Shown in pieces: positions 832 through 13,713 of a DNA stretch of 64,000 nt. The stretch comes from Pecten maximus. Its lineage: Eukaryota. Under the pieces are notes generated by a model. It was given only the letters and a program-made list of their open reading frames with translations. It had not been told where the DNA came from and did no database searches. Numbering within the stretch: position 1 is the stretch's first letter; every line of letters starts with the position of its first letter. The position numbers and the translations under genes were made by a program. The stretch covers positions 15,624,001-15,688,000 of the forward strand of contig NC_047020.1 of NCBI RefSeq assembly GCF_902652985.1, read 5' to 3'.

Positions 832-3800
832 ATGGCAGTGAATCGAAGGGATATGTGTAAGTGTTTTACCAACAGGTACAGGACCAATCGCTTGTAGCCC
901 TAAAACCGGGAAGTGTATTGATCAGTAGGAGTTGATTTTACATATACATTTTGTATATATACATTGGGGAGTTACAGTCTGCCTTGATAACTAGGACCTA
1001 CAGCCTACCTTGATACCTAGGAGTTACAGCCTACCTTGATAACTAGGAGTTACAGCCTACCTTGATAACTAGGAGTTACAGCCTACCTTGATAACTAGGA
1101 GTTACAGCCTACCTTGATAACTAGGAGTTACAGCCTACCTTGATAACTAGGAGTTACAGTCTACCTTGATAACTACGAGTTACAGCCTACCTTGATAACT
1201 ACGGGTTACAGCCTACCTTGATAACTAGGAGATACAGCCTACCTTGATAACTAGGAATTACAGCTTACCTTGATAACTATGCCCTACAGCCTACCTTGAT
1301 AACTAGGAGTTACAGCCTACCTTGATAACTAGGAGTTACAGCCTACCTTGATAACTAGGAGTTACAGCCTACCTTGATACCTAGGAGTTACAGCCTACCT
1401 TGATAACTAGGAGATACAGTTTACCTTGATAACTAGGAGTTACAGCCTACCTTGATACCTAGGAGTTACAGCCTACCTTGATAACTAGGAGTTACAGCCT
1501 ACCTTGATAACTAGGAGTTACTATAAATACATACATTTATGGTGTAATGAATATATCAATACACTTTCCAATCATTGTTGTGTGTTAGACATTCCACAGC
1601 TGAACCTGTATATATGTAAACATGAAATCTACTCTATTGCTGTATTATGTGTTTACTCTGAACTGATGAGCTAACTAGCTTGAAAACTACATATACTACA
1701 TGTAGGTAAAGCATATACATATTTGAGAAGTTAAAGTCTACATATATCTTAATTAATTGATAACTACACAATTGTGCTGTTAAAATCTTTAAACAACTTC
1801 TCAATATACCCAAGAAGTACAAGGTCATACTTTTTTTGTCAGTAGCATACTGGAATGAAGGGTTACCATTTAAGATTGTTCAAATATATGATCTTAACTT
1901 ACTTTTAATGTTTCATTGGTCAAACATGTTAAAATCTTTAATCAACTGTTTCTTATTTACAAAGAGGCCCAGAGTAATGATATTGGTCAGATAGCATGTA
2001 GACTTTAAAAATGGGCTATTAGGATCATAGAGGATCATAAAGGATCATAAAGGATCATTGAGGTTAATAGACAACAATAGAGGACCATAGAGGTCCATAA
2101 AGGAAAATAGAGGACAACAGAGGATCAAAGAGGATCATTAAGGACCATTTAGGTCCATAGAGGAAACACAAGATCATAGTGGACATGATAGGGAATCGAG
2201 GACCAAAAATGATGAAAGTGGATCATAGAGGATCATAAAGGGCCATTAAGGTCCATAGAGGAAAAAAGTGGACCATTGGGGACCATGTACAATAGAGGAC
2301 AACAGAGGATAAAGAATCATAGAGGACCATGATAGACCCTAGAGGAGTCCACAGTGAGGATTGCCTTGTTTACAGTAACCACTGTGGTCTGTAGGTCCAA
2401 ATGAATCCACTCAAAGGTTGTTTGATAAAACATCTCCGGTAATAAAACTGAGATCACATGTTCTTTAGTATATGACAAACATTGCCGTTGATGACATTAA
2501 ACACTAAATACTAGGTAATGTCTTTTTCTGTATTGTTTCTTTTTGTAGGTCCCTCAGCTGATGATAGGGATGTGGTACAGAGGCTGGGAAACATACGATT
2601 GACAATGAGGAAAGGACTTCTACAGCAGGAAAAGGTAGCACAGAAATTTTGGAAATGCATATAAAAGAAAACAACATTGTTTTCGATATATATTAATTTA
2701 CCTTCATGAAGGGAAAGAGAGCTGATTTTTAGGCCTATATGCCTAATTTTAAGGTCATATAGAGGTTGAAGGTTGAATTTAAATTCTTTATCTGGGATAT
2801 TATAGCACCTGACTCACCATGTAGTTTATGCTACTTGATGTGTATAAAGTAGGATGGCAAGATGGTGTATTGCTCAAAACTTTTGTCTGAAGATGGACCC
2901 CTGTGAACTGTGACCATAATTGAGCATAGTTGCGCCTAATTTCCATGTTATGCCTCAGACATAACCATGGTTACCTCAGACATAACCATGGTTACCTCAG
3001 ACATAACCATGGTTACCTCAAACATAACCATGGTTACCTCAGACATAACCATAGTTATACCTCAGACTTAACCATGGTTATACCTCAATGATCAGACATA
3101 ACCATGGTTATACCTCAGACATAACCATGGTTATACCTCAATGATCAGACATAACCATGGTTATACCTCAGACATAACCATGGTTATACCTCAATGATCA
3201 GACATAACCATGGTTATACCTCAGACTTAACCATGGTTATACCTCAATGATCAGACATAACCATGGTTAAACCCCCTGTGTTAAGTAATCCAGTTTATAT
3301 AGGACCCCTATTGGTATAATTTTTTGAACTATCATTTTATACACGTTTGACTAAAATATGTTTCCCTTTAGTCCTATTTATGATGTGTCTAACTGCACGT
3401 TCTAGTTGTAATAACTTAATACAATTTTTCTTAGCATTAATCCATTAGAGAAGTTTTTACTGTTTTAATTTTACAGTTGGTGTAGCTGCTTCAGGTTAAC
3501 TGACAAAGAATCGAAAATTTGAAGTGGATATACAGTTTAGTTTATAACATGTCATCACCGGAAACCCACGAGATACCGCTCTTACGTTTGTATCACTAAC
3601 GTAGAGTAACGATGAGCTGTGTGTCGTTGGTTCCTGACGATGATAACATGTTAGCTACAATAAAACATTATTTTTGTGTCTTCCTGTCAAGGATTTATAT
3701 CAGTCATATCTCCATTGTGGTTTGTCATCAATAACTTCTACTCTGTATTTTTCAGGCAGATGTAATAGTTACAAATTCCTCGGGAAATCTCAATCTAAAG

Positions 3801-6800
3801 GCTGGTAGAACCACACAGGCACTGTTAGAGGCTGCCGGGGACACACTACAGGAACAGTGTAATAAAAATTACCCACAAGGCATCAGGCCTGGGGAGGTTG
3901 CAGAGACAAACGGAGGCAATCTTGATTGTCAATATGTTTTTTATTGTTTCATGACATCATGGGATGATGCAGAGAGAGCTGCCTCACGAGGAGTATGTAT
4001 CTGTGATGTGTCTAATTCATTATTTGATAATATACTGGTAGCAACATTAATTTAGAGGGTTAAAGTGATTTTAAAGCTTTTTTAAGGAGACTGAAATCAT
4101 TAACAATCAACAGTGTGCTAAGTAAAAAAGACAACACATTAACAATCAACAGTGTGCTAAGTAAAAAAAGACAACACATTAACAATTAATCAACAGTGTG
4201 CTAAGTAAAAAAAGACAACACATTAACAATCAACAGTGTGCTAAGTAAAAAAGACAACACATTAACAATCAACAGTGTGCTAAGTAAAAAAAGACAACAC
4301 ATTAACAATCAACAGTGTGCCAAGTAAAAAAAGACAACACATTAACAATCAACAGTGTGCCAAGTAAAAAAAGACAACACATTTTATGATTGATGTAATG
4401 AATATATCTTACTGTCAGTATAGAGAAATTAAAACCCCTTCAAATAATCTGTATAAACCAGACTCTGTTGCATCACATTCATACTTATACTTATAGTAAT
4501 TATTAATGGAATTTCATTTCCTCAATTTAAACCCATTTTTAAGATTATTAACAGAAACAAAGTGTGTTTGATAGTAGGTCAGAGATTGAGACTTCAATGT
4601 AGATCACACTGCACTAACTAATGTATGTAAACAGCCAATCACCATGCAATTCAGGATGTCTTAGTTTAAAGTTAAAATGCCTACAGAGCCTTTTTTGTCA
4701 ATATGTAACCATGAATTATCCATTTTTATATGAGTATAAAACTATATTTTTATGAAGGATTTTTTTTTTTTTGGTTTGTTTATGTAACAAAATAACTTCT
4801 CTAATCTAAATTCCATGTCTTCATGTTCACAATGTGATGTTTTTCAGGTTTTTTGTAAATGTATGAAAACCTGCCTAAACATGGCGGATTCCAATGGGGT
4901 GTGTTCTATGGTTTTCCCGGCCCTGGGGACAGGACTGTTGAAATTCCCAGTGGAGGAGATTTATAACCTAGTGGTGCTGTGTGTCTTAGATTTCTCCAGA
5001 TCAAAACCACAGTCTACACTTACTGATATAACTATGGTGGTCCATCCCAACGATGATGAGATATTAAAAGTAAGTGACATCCGCAGAAATAGTAATGTTC
5101 AAATGTTACAGTAATTCATAGATAATGAATTTGTATTGAGAATTATAGCTGTATACTTCTTTATCCATTATATTATATTTTCCAAATGATTACACTGTGG
5201 TCATGTGATATGTGTTATGGAGATATTTGGGGAAGAGTTCTAGCTATATGGACATCATTCTTGGTTGACTTTCACTTTCGCTAGTCTCTGCACCCCTGGA
5301 TGTGCCTAGGCAAAATTTAAGTCACAATTGACTAGCTACCATGTATGACTTGTGTCTGGGTAAAAAAAAACAACTAATCACGAAGCTGATATCTTTCTTT
5401 TGAAGATCATAGAGGAACAACAATCAAGTAAAGGTATTGTGACCTTGAGGTGTGTTTGATGTACATCAAAGACTCCCAGACAGTAAAAGTGAACTTAAAC
5501 ACCTGGAGTATTAAGGATGCATAGACATATTTTATCTCTAAATGACACTGTAAAGTATAAGGGTTGATTACATGTAAAATAAAGGACAGGATGTCGGAAT
5601 TCAATCTAATTTACTATGTTTTTGATGAGATGGTTCCCTTTTTTAGGGATTTCGTGAAGAAAATAAAAAGTTGCTGAGGAAGCCAAAAGATTGTGCAGGT
5701 AAGTAAGTACAGGATAATTGTCAATTAGAACACTTCTCTCAAACCACAGATATAAATTGGGTCAAATTCAAAAACAATGACTACAACCAATACCCAAGAA
5801 GTATGGAGTGTTTGAACTTTAATTATCTCATCTCAGAACACATGTATGGAAATTTAGGGACTACCGCCCAGTATACAAAGTATCCAACTAATGGACCTCA
5901 GTTGGTGGACTCTATTCCGACCCAGAGCAGTTTTTTTCTCTAAGAAAGCTGAGATCGGACCATTCTATGATGTTGTGGTCGAGTCTATGGAGAAGACACT
6001 TTCTCCCTATTGTAGTGGACAGCATTTAATAGCCTCTTATTTAGTGAGGTAGCTTCCAGCTTCACATACCACAAGAAGACTTTGTCTGAAAATGACTCAA
6101 AGGGCAATAAATCTCACAAACAGACACTTTAGATTGATAAAAAATCAGCAAACATGGAAAAAATAGGATATAGTAATTGTTCTAGATCTCCAAGGGTCAC
6201 AGAATGCACATATTTCACCAAACTTGGCACCAAAAGGCCTTACCAGGAACAAGGGCAAAATCTACCAATGAATCTGTCTCATTTTAAACTCCCGTGTGTA
6301 TATTTTAATGATATGGCTCAGAATATACATTTATGCTGAATAACGGGATACTAACATGCCAATGAAAATTGGGTGGGGTCATAAGATCATAGCATCCACA
6401 ACCCAGAAAATATGTCTCTGAAACTCATTTCCCCAATGGTAATGTCTTTATCAAATTTTATCAATAGATGTTTCTTAAGTGATGAAGCTTAGAATGATGA
6501 TCAAGAAAGGAATATTTTTATAGGGTGTTACTGATACCCGACAATTTTGCAATACTGTTTATATAAAACTTCTTTTTGTACTTGTAGAAAAGACCAGGAT
6601 GTTTTTAAAACTGATTATATACCCACCATTTGAGGACGATTCCTTCACTGTATATTATACAACAGTATGATTGTATCCCTCATAGATCACGACAGTTAAA
6701 GGTCCATTATGGTTCTCACAGGTGAATTCTAACAAATGAAGACTTTTGAGTCAACCTTAAAATGTAATTTAAATTTTTGTTTTTTATTTGTTTTTATTTC

Positions 6801-9800
6801 ATTTTGAAGAGACCAAAGGTGATCTTGAACAGAGGAGTGAAAAGATACAGATTGGACGAACTTGCGTTGCTATAGTAACAGGATCCATTGTAGAACAACA
6901 GGTATGTGACCTTGACCTACTGGTGACCTTGAAAACTTTTTTTATCCCTTCAGATATCTCATAGAGTTAAACAACGAAATTCAAACGACAAAATAATTTT
7001 ATAGTCTGCTAATGCAAAAAAGTCTTTGCTCTATGCTCTGAGTGCAAAAAAAAAAAAAAAAAAATGACAACATAATATAAATACCTGTAACGGGGGAAAA
7101 TCATGCTTGATACTTCAATTAAAAAATCAAATTTGGATTATTGCACAGTGTATTTGTAACCCTGGTACAAAGATGTCTGTCACAATAATAACCAGTTATG
7201 CATTATATAATTGAATTGAACTGTGCATGTTGATTACATCACAAACGAGGTTTTGTCAACAACATTTACTGTACCCACTAATAATTCATGTTATAGAGTA
7301 TCATGCTATGAAATGGGTCAAATCAACTAGGCCAAACAAAACAATATCTGTAGGTAAGATTTCATGGTAAAGAAATCTACCAATTTTATTAGTTCCTATT
7401 CTGACAAAACTTAGACCCCTACCAGTGAATTATTACAGTTTGATAACTAGCAGGGCTTGTAGGGGACATCAATACTCAGTTTGCTTGTTCTTTTTGTGGA
7501 GGTTTTTTGTGGGTTTTTTTTCAATATTTGTGTGAGTGATTGATCATGATTTTGACATCAAAAGTTTAGGTTAATATAAAAACATCTAGAGCTATTAAAT
7601 ATATTGAACCAGGAAACAAATAACATTTTTTGTTTTGCCTTAAATCACAAACTTGGATGTAAATTCAGGCAGATGTCCTTGTAAACTTGACCAACAATAA
7701 GTTGAGACTAGACAGAGGGTCACTGTCCAGGGCTTTCCTAGATGCTGCAGGTGAAGGACTTCAGACGGAATGTGATACATTTGCTGGTGGTCTGAGTTGT
7801 GGGGATATTGCTGTGACCGGTGGCTACTCCCTGCCCTCTGTGAATGTGTTCCACACTACACTGCCTTATTATATGACAAAGGAAAAAGAATCCAACATAG
7901 AGGTAGCAGACATTTTTCTCCTGACAACATGTATTCTTTGACAACATTGTAATCTTTGACAACATTGTATTGACAACATTGTAATCATTAACAACATTGT
8001 AATCATTGACATTATTGTATTCTTTGACATTATTGTAATCATTGACAACATTGTAATCTTTGACAACATTGTAATCATTGACAACATTGTAATCATTAAC
8101 AACATTGTAATCTTTCACGACATTGTATTCTTTGACAACATTGTAATCTTTGACAACATTGTATTCTTTGACAACATTGTAATCTTTGACAACATTGTAA
8201 TCATTGACAACATTGTAATCATTGACAACATTGTAATCTTTGACATTATTGTAATCATTGACAACATTGTATTCTTTGACAACATTGTAATCTTTGACAA
8301 CATTGTAATCTTTGACATTATTGTAATCATTGACAACATTGTATTCTTTGACAACATTGTAATCATTAACAACATTGTAATCATTAACAACATTGTAATC
8401 TTTAACAACATTGTAATCTTTCACGACATTGTATTCTTTGACATTATTGTAATTATTGACAACATTGTAATCATTGACATTATTGTAATTATTGACAACA
8501 TTGTAATCATTGACATTATTGTAATCTTTGACAACATTGTATTCTTTGACAATATTGTATTGACAACATTATAATCTTTGACAACATTGTATTCTTTGAC
8601 AATATTGTAATCTTTGACAACATTGTAATCTTTGACAACATTGTAATCTTTGACAACATTGTAATCTTTGACAACATTGTATTCTTTGACAACATTGTAT
8701 TGACAACATTATAATCTTTGACAACATTGTATTCTTTGACAATATTGTAATCTTTGACAACATTGTAATCTTTGACAATATTGTAATCTTTGACAACATT
8801 GTAATCTTTGACAACATTGTAATCTTTGACAACATTGTATTCTTTGACAATATTGTAATCTTTGACAACATTGTAATCTTTGACAACATTGTAATCTTTG
8901 ACAACATTGTAATCTTTGACAACATTGTAATCTTTGACAACATTGTATTCTTTGACAACATTATAATCTTTGACATTATTGTAATCATTGACAACATTGT
9001 ATTCTTTGACAACATTGTATTCTTTGACAATATTGTAATCATTAACAACAATGTAATCTTTGACAACATTGTAATTTTTGGCAACATTGTAATCTTTGAC
9101 AACATTGTAATCTTTGACAACATTGTAATCTTTGACAACATTGTAATCATTGACATTATTGTAATCATTGACAACATTGTAATTTTTGACAACATTGTAT
9201 TCTTTGATAACATTGTAATCTTTAACAACGTTGTAATATTTGACCAAAGGCAAGTGAGCTTATGCCATGGATAGTGCAGAGTGCTATGCCTGGCAGGCAA
9301 TCTGTACTTTTTTTCATTTTAACAACTTCTGATCAATATAACCAGATGCACAGATACCTGATTTTATGCCTGTAGCATGCTGAGGTGATGACCTTTGGCC
9401 TAGAGATCTGATATTGGGCCAGAGCATGCTGGGGTTAAAGGCTACCAAGTTTGTTGAAAATAACTATTACCTTGACTTACATTCAAAGTCACATGGTTCA
9501 CTGTCTAAAAATCTTTAAACAGCAATTTGTCAATGACCAAGAGACCTGACATTGGGCCAGCAGTATGCTGGGATCAGGGCTACAAAATTTGTTTAAATGA
9601 ATGACCCTTAAGCCTATACTCTTATATTGTATGAACTGGTTTTTAGCTAATTAACATCTACATAAATTACTTAGATCAATGTCAAAGTTGTATAAGAAGC
9701 AGGTGAGTGATACAGGCTTTAAACTTCACTGACAAAGTTATAAGCCATTCCCATATCAAATGTTAAGACATTTTACCAGACAAATGACTGATGGCCCTGA

Positions 9801-12800
9801 CAAAATTCATTCTACAGCTAGGGTTGCTCTAATGCATACATGTAGCAGATGCTGAATTTGTCTAACATTTCATGCTTCATTTAAAATCAAGTTAAGGAGG
9901 TTTGTATCTTCCATATCTAGGCTATACAAACAGTGTACTAGTACTACAGCCATTAAACTTTCAGGTTCTACTGAAAACATGTTGAAGATGCTGAAATTGA
10001 CCTTCAATTGCACTGTAAACTCACATATTATAGAAGTCCTATTTTTGTGCTGAGGCACCCCGCCAAATTGTACTAGTTGTAGTTGTTGTATATGTGAATG
10101 TTGTTTTGTACAACAAAAATTGCGAGTGTACAAATTCAACATCACACTACATGTAATTTGATTAAATTCAATTATGTACTAAAGTTTGAGTCAGTTGAGT
10201 ATTTTAGACTAACTGTCTACTCTATTTTGTATCAGAGATTATTGTTTAACAATTAATCAGGTTTTATAGAATAGGAGAGATAAAGTATTTTGATTAGTTT
10301 TATGATTTAAAGTGTGAAGTGTATGTCCTGCTGTAGGTCCTGACACTAGTGGTTCAGCAATGCCTGATGCAGTTAGAGGATATGAATCTCCGAAGTATTG
10401 CTTTTCCCTGTTTTGCCTGTGGTCAGCACCGCTATCCAGACTCTGTTGCAGCGACGACCTTTCTTCAGACTGTTGATGAGTACATCCAGAACAACAATCA
10501 AACTTGTGTTGAGGAGATCTCCTTGGTGATATACCCTGGAGGACCATCTCTGTGGAAGGAAGTCTGGCAGGTCAGTGCCTCCTGCTCTTCTAAATCTGAT
10601 ACTTAAATTCATCAAAATTTAAGAGTTTTGCTCCTGATTAGTTACCTTGTTTTTACATCGTACATAAAGGCAACCCAGGAGTTTCAAGAATGAATCTGAT
10701 AGAAAATATAAAGTAAATCAGTTTAAAAGTTTGTTATTGATGTAATTTTCAATTGAAATGAAATCTTAATTAACTTTTTATACAAAATCCAATAAAGCTG
10801 TATGGAAAGTAATGGTAAAGATATCAATGTTGCATCAATTTTAATGGTAAAAGAAGTTACACTTTAGAATACATATGTACGGTAGTAGGTGAAATAACAA
10901 AAAAAAAACTATTTTTGATTTCATTTGTCGTGCATTAACCTTGTCCACACCATTTTATGTGAGTGTGAGTATGGGGGGTGGGGGTGGGGGGGTGATATAG
11001 ATATATTTTTATGGATGTCCGTCTGTCACCCTCAACCACATCCCGATCCATTCATAATCAATTTCATATGTGAAGAAACCCAAAAAAGATTTGGTAACAT
11101 CAAATTCTAACTTCAAGTTTTACACCTTCTGGTGGTCATTAGTCAAGGTCACCTTTGACCCCTGCTGGGTACAATGTGTCCTGTCTTGTTCTGAATCAAT
11201 GTCCAAATCAACAGATTTAGTTACTGTTTATATCAAGGTAACATCAAGCTATATTCACATCATCAGCTTCATCCTAAAACCACTTAACAGATTTTGGGGG
11301 AACTTGACGAGATGGAAGGCCAAGTTGAAAGCTAAACCAGACATGCAGGGAACCATAGGGAGTTGGCTTTTATTCCTTATCCACTAATATATCTACAGAC
11401 AATGCCATTTACTTGTTGTAGTCGTACAACTGAAGAAACAATATTCAGAGAATTGAAAAAATTATCCCTTTAGGTTGTTTCCTTTGAGATCAGGTTCCCC
11501 ATTTTATCTATGTAAAAAATAGACAATAACATTCATTTTGTATGTAAACTATAATAGCAAACTATGACTCCCTCCCCAATAACAAACAGGGGACCTTAGA
11601 GACTCTTCAGGTTTCAAACCTATTCATCACAAATGGTTGTGAATTTCATTTCTTCTATCATTTTTTTCAGACATTTGTCAAGGAACTTAAAACTTTAAAG
11701 AAAAGACATGTTAAAAGTTCTGACACTGAGGTAAAGCCTGCAGTTCTACCTGGCTGGGGAGCCAGACCAAAGGTGATAGTTAGGCCTGTATATCAGCTGA
11801 AGAAAAAACCCAAACATACAGTCATTCCAGTGACTCCAGCTGCTCCGGTACGCGGAACAAAAGAATGGTTCCAATTGAAATACACTGAGGATATTTGTAC
11901 ACCAGATTACTGGGTACACCACAAGGGGGGAACTCCAGTCAAAAAACTCAAACTTTCTCTGGAAGTCTCCCTGAAAAAGGCTTACGTGCTGAAGCAGGTT
12001 GATCATAGTACTAGAGATGCTGTTGTCAAACTAGTAAATGAAACTTGGGAAATGGATAAATTTGGAGCGGGTAAAGATGCTAGGGGCTTAGATGAGCTTG
12101 GTTATAGTAAAATTGAGGTGAAGGAAGTGCTACGAGTAGAAAACTTGGATCTGTATGAAAAATATGCGACAGAACGACAGAGGATTTTTTCAAAAGCTTC
12201 AAAGAAAGGCCAGTCTTTGACCTCAGTCAAAGATAGTAATGGTTCAGATGGAGAAGTTTGTACTTATACCAAAATGAAGCCTTGTTTAAAGAATGAGCTA
12301 TTTCCTGAGATAAATGAACATTATTTATTCCATGGGACCAAGGAAAACATTATCGAGAAAGTGTTGTCACAGGGCCTGGACAATAGGATGGCTGGGGACA
12401 ATGCCATGTTTGGTCAAGGTGTTTATGCTGCTGAGAGTTCTACAAAAGCAGATCAGTATGCTGGTTGGTATAAACAATTCTATTGCATGTAATTTTTGAA
12501 AGAATCATATTTTATGTAGAACATCAATGGGCGAAGGCAACTTAAATTTGTATAACTGGAATGTCTTTAAACGATTCTTATAATCTCCATTTGGTGCAGA
12601 GTGCATTTTAGGAATGATCGGAAACCAAGTTGAAATTTGTAATTATTCATAATATAATGAAGGTAGTCTTCTCAACTTTCATAAGTAGGTAAATGCTTAG
12701 TTGTGCATGGTGAATCTTGTGACATGATCAGGAAAACAATATGGTGGACAGGCAGCCATCTTGTATTTTATGGTCAAAGTTTGTTACTGCCGATTCTCAG

Positions 12801-13470
12801 AAAGTTTTAAAAGGATCTTTTTTGAAATTTCACATCTAGGTTTTTCGTTTGCATATCTGTCTGGTGTGTTTTGCAAATTGATTTGAAACCAAGATGGGAG
12901 ACAGACAACCATCTTTGCTAGGTGATGTTTGTTATCACTATTTCTTAGAAAAAAACATTGGATTATTCTCATACTTCATGTGTAGGTTGTTCATCCTTCC
13001 TAGTTAGTAGAATAAGGTACTGATCAGAAACGAAGATGATTGTTGATTAGTGCTTTCTTAGTCCGTCAAAGGAGACAAAGAACTTTAGGTGATCTCTTTT
13101 AGATTTGAAAATAAACTTAAAGAAGATACAAAATTATTATACCTTTTCGATGATTTTTTTCATACTAGTTGAAATTTTGATATTGTGTAAAAAAAATTTC
13201 TTGTGTATCTTTATAGATTTCAAAGACAACAGGACTACATCTCCAAAGAAAATGTTTCTGGCAAGAATGTGCCTAGGGGAAGCATATGTATCCAAGACTG
13301 CTAACAAGTACAGGCGACCTCCTTGCAAAGAGTGTTTCCAAGACAACTGTGCTCACAAAAAATTTTACGACAGTGTAGTAGGAGATGGGAAGTGGATCTT
13401 TCGGGAATTTGTTGTGTACGATCCACGGCAAAGTTACCCAGAATTCCTCATCACATATGTCAGGAAATGA
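832..13470 (+). CDS. Macrodomain-containing poly(ADP-ribose) polymerase (2 macrodomains + PARP catalytic domain; PARP14/15-like architecture, no WWE domain seen), ~742 aa
   Basis: Exons, all GT-AG and phase-consistent, total 2229 nt: 832-856, 2549-2634, 3756-3992, 4848-5069, 5647-5698, 6810-6901, 7669-7902, 10337-10570, 11671-12463, 13217-13470. Macro 1: EKADVIVTNSS..ALLEAAG..GEVAETNGGNL..SMVFPALGTG. Macro 2: QQADVLVNLTN..LSRAFLDAAG..SIAFPCFACG. PARP domain: NEHYLFHGT, MFGQGVYAAESSTKADQY, MFLARMCLG, YDSV, REFVVYDPRQSYPEFLITY. Confidence 0.92.
968..1521. repeat. 26-bp minisatellite (AACTAGGAGTTACAGCCTACCTTGAT)n, ~21 copies, PARP intron 1
   Basis: Tandem units visible directly, with no spacers. 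Confidence 0.95.
2020..2345. repeat. Degenerate ~10-bp tandem repeat (AGGATCATAG)n
   Basis: Recurrent aggatcatag/aggaccatag units. Confidence 0.8.
2953..3268. repeat. 21-30-bp minisatellite with palindromic core ATAACCATGGTTAT
   Basis: Units cagacataaccatggtta(ta)cct, with or without caatgat. Confidence 0.9.
3544..3652. repeat. Degenerate ~110-bp hairpin (ATAACATGTCATC...GATGATAACATGTTA), probable transposon remnant
   Basis: Imperfect inverted arms around a ctcttacgtt...aacgtagag apex. Confidence 0.5.
4099..4383. repeat. ~40-bp minisatellite (ATTAACAATCAACAGTGTGCTAAGTAAAAAAAGACAACAC)x7
   Basis: Tandem copies visible directly. Confidence 0.95.
5268..5280 (-). promoter_or_regulatory. Consensus IRF-E (CGAAAGTGAAAGT on - strand) in PARP intron 4
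   Basis: actttcactttcg at 5268-5280 is the reverse complement of the GAAAGTGAAAGT IRF1/2 consensus. Confidence 0.4.
7922..9240. repeat. 18-bp minisatellite (TTGACAACATTGTAATCT)n, ~70 copies, PARP intron 7
   Basis: Tandem units; explains the spurious repetitive VVKDYN / MLSKIT ORFs. Confidence 0.97.
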
Positions 13471-13713
13471 TTATATTTTTGTGACAGACATATTATGTAC
13501 ATGACTTATATTTTACTCATATACAAGTGTAATTATTTATTTAGAGTAATTCATATGTTTTTATATTTACATATTGATTTTTAATGTTTATTCACATAAA
13601 TACATGTTGTTATCTCAATTTTAAGAGTGTTCATTTATATCTTGATTACGATACAATTTATCCTGCAGATAAAAGTTGTTTTTATAACTTTCATACTATT
13701 TATACATGTTTGA

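Follow-up and report, generated by a model that had tools for sequence, protein, structure and literature searches.

A transcribed macro-PARP gene with an H-Y-E catalytic triad in the scallop Pecten maximus

Animal PARPs that carry macrodomains (macro-PARPs) are treated as mono-ADP-ribosyltransferases in which the catalytic Glu has been lost. PARP3 and PARP4, PARP1-type enzymes that have a regulatory helical domain, possess a complete His-Tyr-Glu (H-Y-E) triad yet make mono-ADP-ribose only, and the triad is therefore insufficient for chain formation. PARP14 and PARP9 have H-Y-L and Q-Y-T triads, respectively; within clade 3, Glu was found in one protein only, from a ciliate, and the macrodomain-containing subclades carry an aliphatic residue at this position (Citarelli et al. 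2010). Invertebrate PARP14-like genes are duplicated in clusters (Perina et al. 2014, PMC4245714). Here we describe a gene of the scallop Pecten maximus whose product joins two macrodomains to a PARP domain with an H-Y-E triad. The gene lies in a stretch of 64,000 nucleotides (contig NC_047020.1, positions 15,624,001 to 15,688,000; written C6:15624001-15688000 below), which is referred to as the window and is free of any N.

The gene occupies positions 832-13470 of the window on the forward strand. It comprises 10 coding exons, every intron is of the GT..AG type, and the coding sequence of 2229 nucleotides specifies 742 residues plus a stop. It is already known, in that RefSeq lists it under an automatic “PARP14-like” name; the public protein P0152 ([quoted passage not shown], 742 amino acids) contains all 10 exon peptides in order and with 0 mismatches. 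Exons were translated one by one, each in its own phase, and P0152 rather than a joined exon sequence was used for whole-protein analyses. We propose, with a probability of roughly 0.75, that this intact macro-macro-PARP represents a distinct H-Y-E lineage in which the macrodomains would dock the enzyme on its targets and ADP-ribose transfer would depend on the Glu.

The gene is intact and expressed. RNA contigs from 4 runs of 4 studies were mapped on window positions 7600-13550 (5951 letters); as assembled contigs, they inform on presence and splicing, not on expression level. The joints 7902/10337, 10570/11671 and 12463/13217 are seen in RNA contigs of all 4 runs. The exon completing macrodomain 2 is joined straight to the exon that encodes the linker and the start of the catalytic domain, with no further exon in between. 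A single RNA contig of 1901 nucleotides spans exons I to F and continues further upstream. In three runs, the contig sequence 5′ of exon F corresponds to 6869-6898, the end of exon E, which itself ends at 6901. In runs of 8 studies, ~0.36-0.56 of the words sampled in 10300-13500 are present, and the common value of ~0.38 is approximately the exonic share. A hidden exon between 12463 and 13217 was also considered and was ruled out by the direct RNA joint.

Domain architecture, macrodomains and catalytic triad

P0152 is organized as macrodomain 1, macrodomain 2, a disordered linker of ~40 residues and a C-terminal PARP domain of ~290 residues. Pfam recognizes Macro in exons C, D, F and G (E-values from 6e-10 to 3e-5) and PARP (PF00644) in exons H and I, the exons being lettered in order with their coordinates given in the last section. 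In the ortholog P0001, PF00644 is matched at 1.4e-13. An AlphaFold model of P0152, built with an alignment of 32 family members, has a mean predicted local distance difference test (pLDDT) value of 86.6 and is predicted with confidence to form three folded units, namely macrodomain 1 (residues ~14-200), macrodomain 2 (~213-410) and the catalytic part (450-742). Residues 202-212 are of low confidence in the model, and residues 412-449 have pLDDT values below 50.

No WWE domain (PF02825) is found by Pfam on the exons or by a six-frame scan of the gene's chromosome, and all 14 WWE matches that such a scan yields in the scallop genome lie on other chromosomes. Precomputed Pfam domains list PF02825 in 0 of ~100 family proteins; the vertebrate PARP12 matches do have WWE. 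A preliminary description of this DNA had claimed two macrodomains joined to a PARP domain without an intervening WWE, and the Pfam matches on the exons, the chromosome scan and the linker pLDDT of less than 50 all agree with that architecture. A degenerate WWE hidden in the linker was a further candidate, which was rejected on the grounds that the linker is disordered and unconserved. Ankyrin repeats and SAM likewise have no Pfam match on the exons, and P0152 and its kin are on record with PF00644 and PF01661 only.

The triad could be assigned codon by codon. His615 is encoded by CAT at 12331-12333, Tyr646 by TAT at 12424-12426 and Glu722 by GAA at 13405-13407, and the codons 12331, 12424 and 13405 that had been named for these residues beforehand are thus exact. 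In HMMER alignments, Glu722 of R-E-F-V-V-Y falls opposite the Glu of tankyrase-2 (“AEYVIY”), which we take to be the counterpart of PARP1 E988, and opposite an Ile in PARP12 (“SIFVIF”). The scallop motif MFGQGVYAAESSTKADQY is identical to the corresponding tankyrase-2 motif at 11 of 18 positions, a likeness to tankyrase that the preliminary description had correctly picked out. Lys653 is encoded at 12445-12447 in exon H and corresponds to the Lys of S-K-S..Y, a motif typical of tankyrases and PARP1. In S-T-K-A-D-Q-Y, this Lys is common to the scallop tankyrase and PARP1 exons, whereas both PARP12 and the PARP14-like exons of the scallop have Tyr there.

Just ahead of the Glu strand, exon I encodes a Cys-x2-Cys-x4-Cys-x-His insert (13324-13356; P0152 residues 695-705), and the Cys-rich insert amounts to 14 residues relative to tankyrase-2 in the family profile alignment. 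The tankyrase zinc motif, which follows S-K-S-N-Q-Y, has no equivalent in that alignment: the family profile is gapped where tankyrase-2 has GGGTGCPVHKDRSCYICH, and the Cys cluster of the family lies further downstream. The protein carries all residues needed for Glu-dependent chemistry on nicotinamide adenine dinucleotide (NAD+).

For the macrodomain profile of the family, the best solved relative is the tandem of PARP14 macrodomains 1 and 2 (MD1-MD2; 1e-63), followed in order by PARP14 MD2, PARP9, PARP14 MD3 and PARP15. Macrodomain 1 alone scores 82.6 bits (2e-24) to MD2 of PARP14 and 31.5 bits to MD1 of the same chain. It has the conserved motifs K-x-D-V-[IV]-V and FPA-x-GTG, and within them keeps the ADP-ribose-contacting Asp (KADVIV versus KTDVVV) and the loop (FPALGTG versus FPAIGTG). 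Because the MD2 score is much higher than the MD1 score and these motifs are kept, macrodomain 1 is predicted to be of the reader type rather than of the hydrolase-like MD1 type. We therefore class the macrodomains, by their sequences, as PARP14/PARP9-type, with the reader type being read from macrodomain 1.

Placement of the catalytic domain and its family

A family profile restricted to the catalytic domain matches tankyrase-2 with 96 bits, tankyrase-1 with 93, PARP12 with 92, PARP15 with 77, PARP14 with 65.5, PARP13 with 49, PARP10 with 48 and PARP1 with 44. PARP1-type chains, the group that includes PARP3 and PARP4, thus reach ~44 bits only. Exon H on its own finds tankyrase-2 and tankyrase-1 as the best solved relatives (4e-6), and in a Foldseek comparison of the catalytic part tankyrases come first (1e-14, TMt ~0.78). 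The scallop protein and tankyrases 1 and 2 have in common the H-Y-E triad, the pattern MFG-x-G-x-Y-x-AE-x-S-x-K-x-x-QY, a donor loop of equal length and a YPE[YF]LITY C-terminus. Nonetheless, ankyrin repeats, SAM and the zinc motif are found in the tankyrases only, and identity in the structural alignment is ~21-22%. PARP12, a mono-transferase of clade 3E with an H-Y-I triad, shares MFLARV..GE, RPP, FYDS and YPE with the C-terminal half of the scallop domain. PARP12 differs, however, in having Ile for Glu, Tyr for Lys, and zinc fingers plus WWE instead of macrodomains, and it falls on the opposite side of the tree.

This tree was computed with IQ-TREE under LG+C20 from 41 rows and 327 columns and is unrooted. 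Its rows include 20 family members, nine protist PARPs, vertebrate PARP12, two Pomacea PARP12-like proteins and single unjoined scallop exons. The family is monophyletic with 99/99 support. A second 99/99 split places the family, the scallop tankyrase exon 1 and the protist H-Y-E PARPs on one side and the PARP12, H-Y-I/M and PARP14-like rows on the other. Among the family, the tankyrase exon (68 residues) and the protist PARPs, no branching is resolved on the H-Y-E side. As we read it, the tree speaks against a nesting of the catalytic domain in PARP14/15 without showing the family to be a relative of tankyrases.

Several protist H-Y-E PARPs also carry [FY]REF...YPEYL and come from the choanoflagellates Savillea parva, Salpingoeca kvevrii and S. 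macrocollata and from the dinoflagellate Cladocopium goreaui, along with related transcripts. With 125-227 bits, these relatives match the family profile better than does every human PARP. Where the scallop protein has its Cys insert, Savillea parva has R-[RP]-P-C...C-x-H, and two Salpingoeca species have a shorter version of this cluster. In the protists, the partner is a protein kinase or a second PARP domain in tandem, macrodomains are absent, and the proteins do not form one tree group with the animal family. Because the protists have the same R-E-F catalytic type, the Glu of the animal family is more simply seen as retained than as regained. The protist sequences have the identifiers P0246, P0258 (Salpingoeca kvevrii), P0253 (Savillea parva) and the P0231 cluster (Cladocopium goreaui); the fusion to a protein kinase is found in Salpingoeca kvevrii.

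A HMMER search against 1.84 billion representatives retrieved 1315 relatives at E<=1e-3, of which 61 remain at E<=1e-30. Named bivalve members are those of scallops, oysters, pearl oysters, ark shells, unionids, venerids, mytilids, Solemya, Mya and Dreissena, gastropod members from Physella, Bulinus, Aplysia, Lymnaea, Littorina, Babylonia and Plakobranchus, and annelid members from Lamellibrachia, Ridgeia and Dimorphilus. Most bivalve members are macro-macro-PARPs of ~700-770 residues, and gastropod members are longer. Orthologs in other scallops are 79-84% identical to the protein described here. In all 32 of 32 full-length members, H615, G616, T617, Y646, E649, K653, Y657, C695, C698, C703, R721, E722 and F723 are invariant, and D701 is nearly so. 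The context of the Glu was also tallied in 76 cluster representatives (<=50% mutual identity) that include the C-terminal part; among the 60 commonest contexts counted, every one reads [FY]RE[FY] except for a single R-Q-F.

The scallop genome contains six further paralogs, all on the same chromosome, for a total of seven with this gene, and the His, Tyr, Glu and Cys cluster are kept in all six of them. In being duplicated in clusters, the scallop family resembles the PARP14-like clusters of Perina et al. 2014 (PMC4245714). Automatic names across the kin are inconsistent and include PARP14-like, PARP15-like, PARP12-like and tankyrase-like, conflicts that reflect the ambiguity of the family's assignment. 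The ESM Atlas offers generic PARP clusters only. Taken together, the sequence comparisons identify the catalytic domain as a lineage of its own, which has many members and numerous duplicates in molluscs and annelids. One family fragment, P0072 from Physella acuta (288 amino acids), bears the NCBI name “poly [ADP-ribose] polymerase tankyrase-like”; the other three names belong to full-length kin.

The resemblance to PARP14, PARP15 and PARP9 resides in the tandem macrodomains N-terminal to a C-terminal PARP domain and in the fact that these proteins provide the closest solved macrodomains. Unlike PARP14, the scallop protein has no WWE, KH or RRM region. At the third triad position it has Glu, whereas PARP14 has Leu and PARP9 has Thr or Ser, and PARP9 is inactive with its degenerate Q-Y-T triad in contrast to the H-Y-E of the scallop protein. 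Thus, PARP14/PARP9-type macrodomains are combined with a catalytic domain that is not of PARP14/15 type by profile, Foldseek and tree, which upholds the earlier suggestion of a domain-shuffled mosaic.

Several points weigh against the reading of this gene as a member of a distinct H-Y-E lineage with Glu-dependent transfer. The best solved relative of exon I is PARP12 (8e-5), with tankyrases following. The Glu-bearing half is therefore closer to PARP12 than to tankyrase, and the family could be an early clade-3 branch that kept its Glu. For the same reason, the label “tankyrase-like” that had been given to the catalytic domain suits the half with His and Tyr and fails for the half with Glu; it also fails for the absence of ankyrin repeats, SAM and the tankyrase zinc motif. 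The tree includes no PARP1-4 or clade-6 rows and represents tankyrase and PARP14-like proteins by short single exons (68 residues for tankyrase and ~95 residues for PARP14-like), such that the deep position of the family is not fixed. Given these limits and the lack of a root, we claim no kinship with tankyrases. Forcing the family together with the PARP14-like exons costs 33.5 log-likelihood units with a p-value of 0.056 in the approximately unbiased (AU) test, which is suggestive and falls short of formal rejection. A Ser that contacts nicotinamide in PARP1 and tankyrase is replaced by Ala in the scallop protein, with Ser present in some other members. One gastropod member has weak matches, below the cut-off, to the KH domains of PARP14, a hint that the family and PARP14 have common ancestry in regions other than the catalytic domain. 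Finally, we found no biochemical work on any family member in the literature.

Possible mechanism and competing explanations

If the distinct-lineage reading is correct, the macrodomains would dock the enzyme on ADP-ribosylated proteins, and the catalytic domain would move ADP-ribose from NAD+ with the aid of its own Glu. It would then have no reliance on the substrate-assisted route used by mono-transferases with H-Y-aliphatic triads. With docking on ADP-ribosylated targets and transfer by its own Glu, the enzyme could attach ADP-ribose either beside an existing mark or directly to it.

Analogy with other duplicated macro-PARPs makes a function in immune or stress signalling likely; it draws on the work of Perina et al. 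2014 (PMC4245714), a review of PARP14 and oyster expression lists. The oyster lists name “PARP14” genes as responsive, and the papers are silent on which family is meant. The scallop protein and its relatives might be considered candidate effectors of bivalve antiviral and stress responses.

Our literature search returned no paper on H-Y-E macro-PARPs in molluscs. Molluscs and annelids widely possess a macro-PARP family, expanded by many duplications, in which the H-Y-E triad is invariant. As its catalytic domain falls outside the PARP12/14 group, macrodomains and PARP domains have been combined more than once, or the Glu was lost later and more often than had been assumed. In addition, the family offers a natural setting in which to ask what features other than H-Y-E separate mono- from poly-ADP-ribosylation.

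Among the competing explanations, the one that survives best, to which we assign slightly less than an even chance, is that the enzyme is a mono-transferase that happens to bear Glu. It would represent an early offshoot of clade 3, the PARP12/PARP14 group, in which the ancestral Glu was never lost, and its macrodomains would serve merely for targeting. The similarity of exon I to PARP12, including the four shared motifs listed above, is consistent with such a history, as are the PARP12 score of 92 bits, which is level with those of the tankyrases, and a loop before the Glu strand that is short like that of PARP12. Moreover, the nearest scallop PARPs outside the family, as judged by BLAST, are H-Y-I/M single-exon genes. 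The 99/99 split that divides the family from every sampled clade-3 row argues the other way, and so does the Lys of S-T-K-A-D-Q-Y, which the family has in common with tankyrase and PARP1 exons and which is Tyr in PARP12 and PARP14-like exons. The near-universal retention of the Glu shows that this residue matters, though it is silent on mono- versus poly-ADP-ribosylation. It is established that H-Y-E does not suffice for chains, and PARP3 and PARP4, which have this triad, are the most sober functional analogues for the scallop enzyme.

These same two proteins count against a chain-forming reader-writer, in which the macrodomains would bind mono-ADP-ribose and the H-Y-E domain would extend the mark, or neighbouring sites, to oligo- or poly-ADP-ribose. 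We regard this explanation as unlikely, but it has several features of the protein on its side. Besides H-Y-E, the catalytic domain has the Lys of tankyrase and PARP1 and a donor loop of tankyrase length, its best structural matches are tankyrases, and the tree split puts the family and the tankyrase exon on one side. The macrodomains, judged by macrodomain 1, are also predicted to be of the reader type resembling PARP14 MD2, not the hydrolase-like MD1. However, the protein is without the SAM polymerisation domain and the zinc motif of tankyrases, and the family-specific Cys insert sits close before the Glu strand.

A more elaborate proposal, and one that we consider doubtful, is that the protein belongs to a large PARP clade of molluscs and annelids, so far undescribed, whose macrodomains are fused to a Glu-dependent catalytic domain that extends mono-ADP-ribose marks into chains. 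It would then be a self-priming amplifier of invertebrate innate immunity that converts mono- into poly-ADP-ribose, with the three-Cys insert being a zinc site that shapes the acceptor pocket.

It is very improbable that the gene is an ortholog of PARP14/15 in which WWE disappeared and a reversion restored the Glu. The NCBI automatic names “PARP14-like” or “PARP15-like” suggest as much, the macrodomains are clearly of PARP14 type, and the AU p-value is not below 0.05. Yet the bit scores of PARP14 and PARP15 are well below those of tankyrase and PARP12, the tree is split at 99/99, and the R-E-F catalytic type occurs also in choanoflagellates and a dinoflagellate. In addition, the scallop has separate genes with macrodomains, WWE and a YFAVNASYS/H-Y-M catalytic domain. 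At 19101000-19150015 (+) and 8543120-8558268 (-) of contig C12, macrodomain, WWE and catalytic exons stand in series, and the catalytic exons carry the PARP14 signature YFAVNASYS...P-x-MYI[IV]F with Met at the third triad position. By these signatures, the C12 genes are better counterparts of PARP14/15 than is the window gene. Nesting of the catalytic domain in the PARP14/15 clade, which had been proposed as a tree check, is not seen (99/99 split; AU p 0.056). The mosaic origin and the tree split together indicate that the gene is not a PARP14/15 ortholog, as the preliminary description had argued and as the split, the lower PARP14/15 bits and the separate C12 genes now support, with the AU p-value of 0.056 as a caveat.

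Finally, a decaying or non-functional duplicate is scarcely credible: clusters such as the seven paralogs on one chromosome often include pseudogenes, but the reading frame is uninterrupted across all 10 exons, the splice sites are canonical, spliced RNA is present in several studies, all catalytic residues are kept and orthologs in other scallops are 79-84% identical.

Exon structure, paralogs and local repeats

The preliminary description had both the span of the gene and its start codon right; it was incomplete only in having overlooked a mini-exon of 52 nucleotides at 5647-5698. All features of the gene given here lie on the forward strand. Exon A (832..856) contains the start ATG and encodes residues 1-8 plus the first base of codon 9, with the donor GTAAGT; its peptide equals P0152 residues 1-8, and in the Ylistrum ortholog an N-terminal piece of a length equal to exon A precedes the first matched exon. 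Exon B (2549..2634; acceptor ttgtag, donor gtagca) encodes residues 9-37 with the first strand of macrodomain 1. The codon split between exons A and B, T|GT, specifies Cys, and the exon B peptide is found at P0152 residues 10-37. The N half of macrodomain 1 is encoded by exon C (3756..3992; residues 38-116; Pfam Macro 1.9e-6) and the C half, with the FPALGTG loop, by exon D (4848..5069; residues 117-190; Pfam Macro 1.4e-5), both matching P0152 at 100%.

The mini-exon D′ (5647..5698; acceptor ttttttag, donor gtaagt) was located by means of the P0152 peptide and encodes residues 191-208, a Lys-rich linker between the macrodomains. Exon E (6810..6901), which is defined by the ends of RNA contigs and the P0152 peptide, encodes residues 208-238 with the first strand of macrodomain 2. 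Exon F (7669..7902; residues 239-316; Pfam Macro 6e-10) provides the N half of this domain and exon G (10337..10570; residues 317-394; Pfam Macro 3.1e-5) the C half, and both joints of exon G are seen in 4 runs. The disordered linker and the N part of the PARP domain are encoded by exon H (11671..12463; residues 395-659; Pfam PARP 6.2e-11), and the C part of the PARP domain by exon I (13217..13470; residues 659-742 plus stop; Pfam PARP 0.014). The 3′ untranslated region covers at least 13471..13550, as RNA contigs extend to 13505-13550.

The six paralogs are located on C6 at 15574399-15590551 (-), 15610309-15618308 (-), 12203673-12216715 (+), 12238990-12244742 (+), 35108421-35109612 (-) and 35136853-35138435 (-). 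Two of them lie within ~50 kb upstream of the gene on the opposite strand, one of these in head-to-head orientation a few kb past the left end of the window.

Some RNA contigs have features of their own. In one run, whose RNA nature is conjectural, an unbroken contig of 1213 nucleotides covers 9152-10364 and thus crosses the acceptor at 10337; it could stem from intron retention, pre-mRNA or genomic DNA in the library. At the intronic positions 9230-9459 and 12748-12951, RNA contigs continue into unrelated sequence on both sides in all 4 runs. These two segments probably represent a transcribed repeat or mobile element with copies elsewhere in the genome. RNA contigs of some runs also show single-base differences at 7740 (A>G), 7765 (A>G) and 11789 (T>C), which are most simply explained as alleles that differ between individuals.

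The introns also contain minisatellites, at 968-1521 (26 bp × 21), 2943-3273 (23/53 bp), 4098-4383 (40 bp × 7) and 7922-9244 (18 bp × 74). The last of these gives rise to long spurious open frames on both strands.

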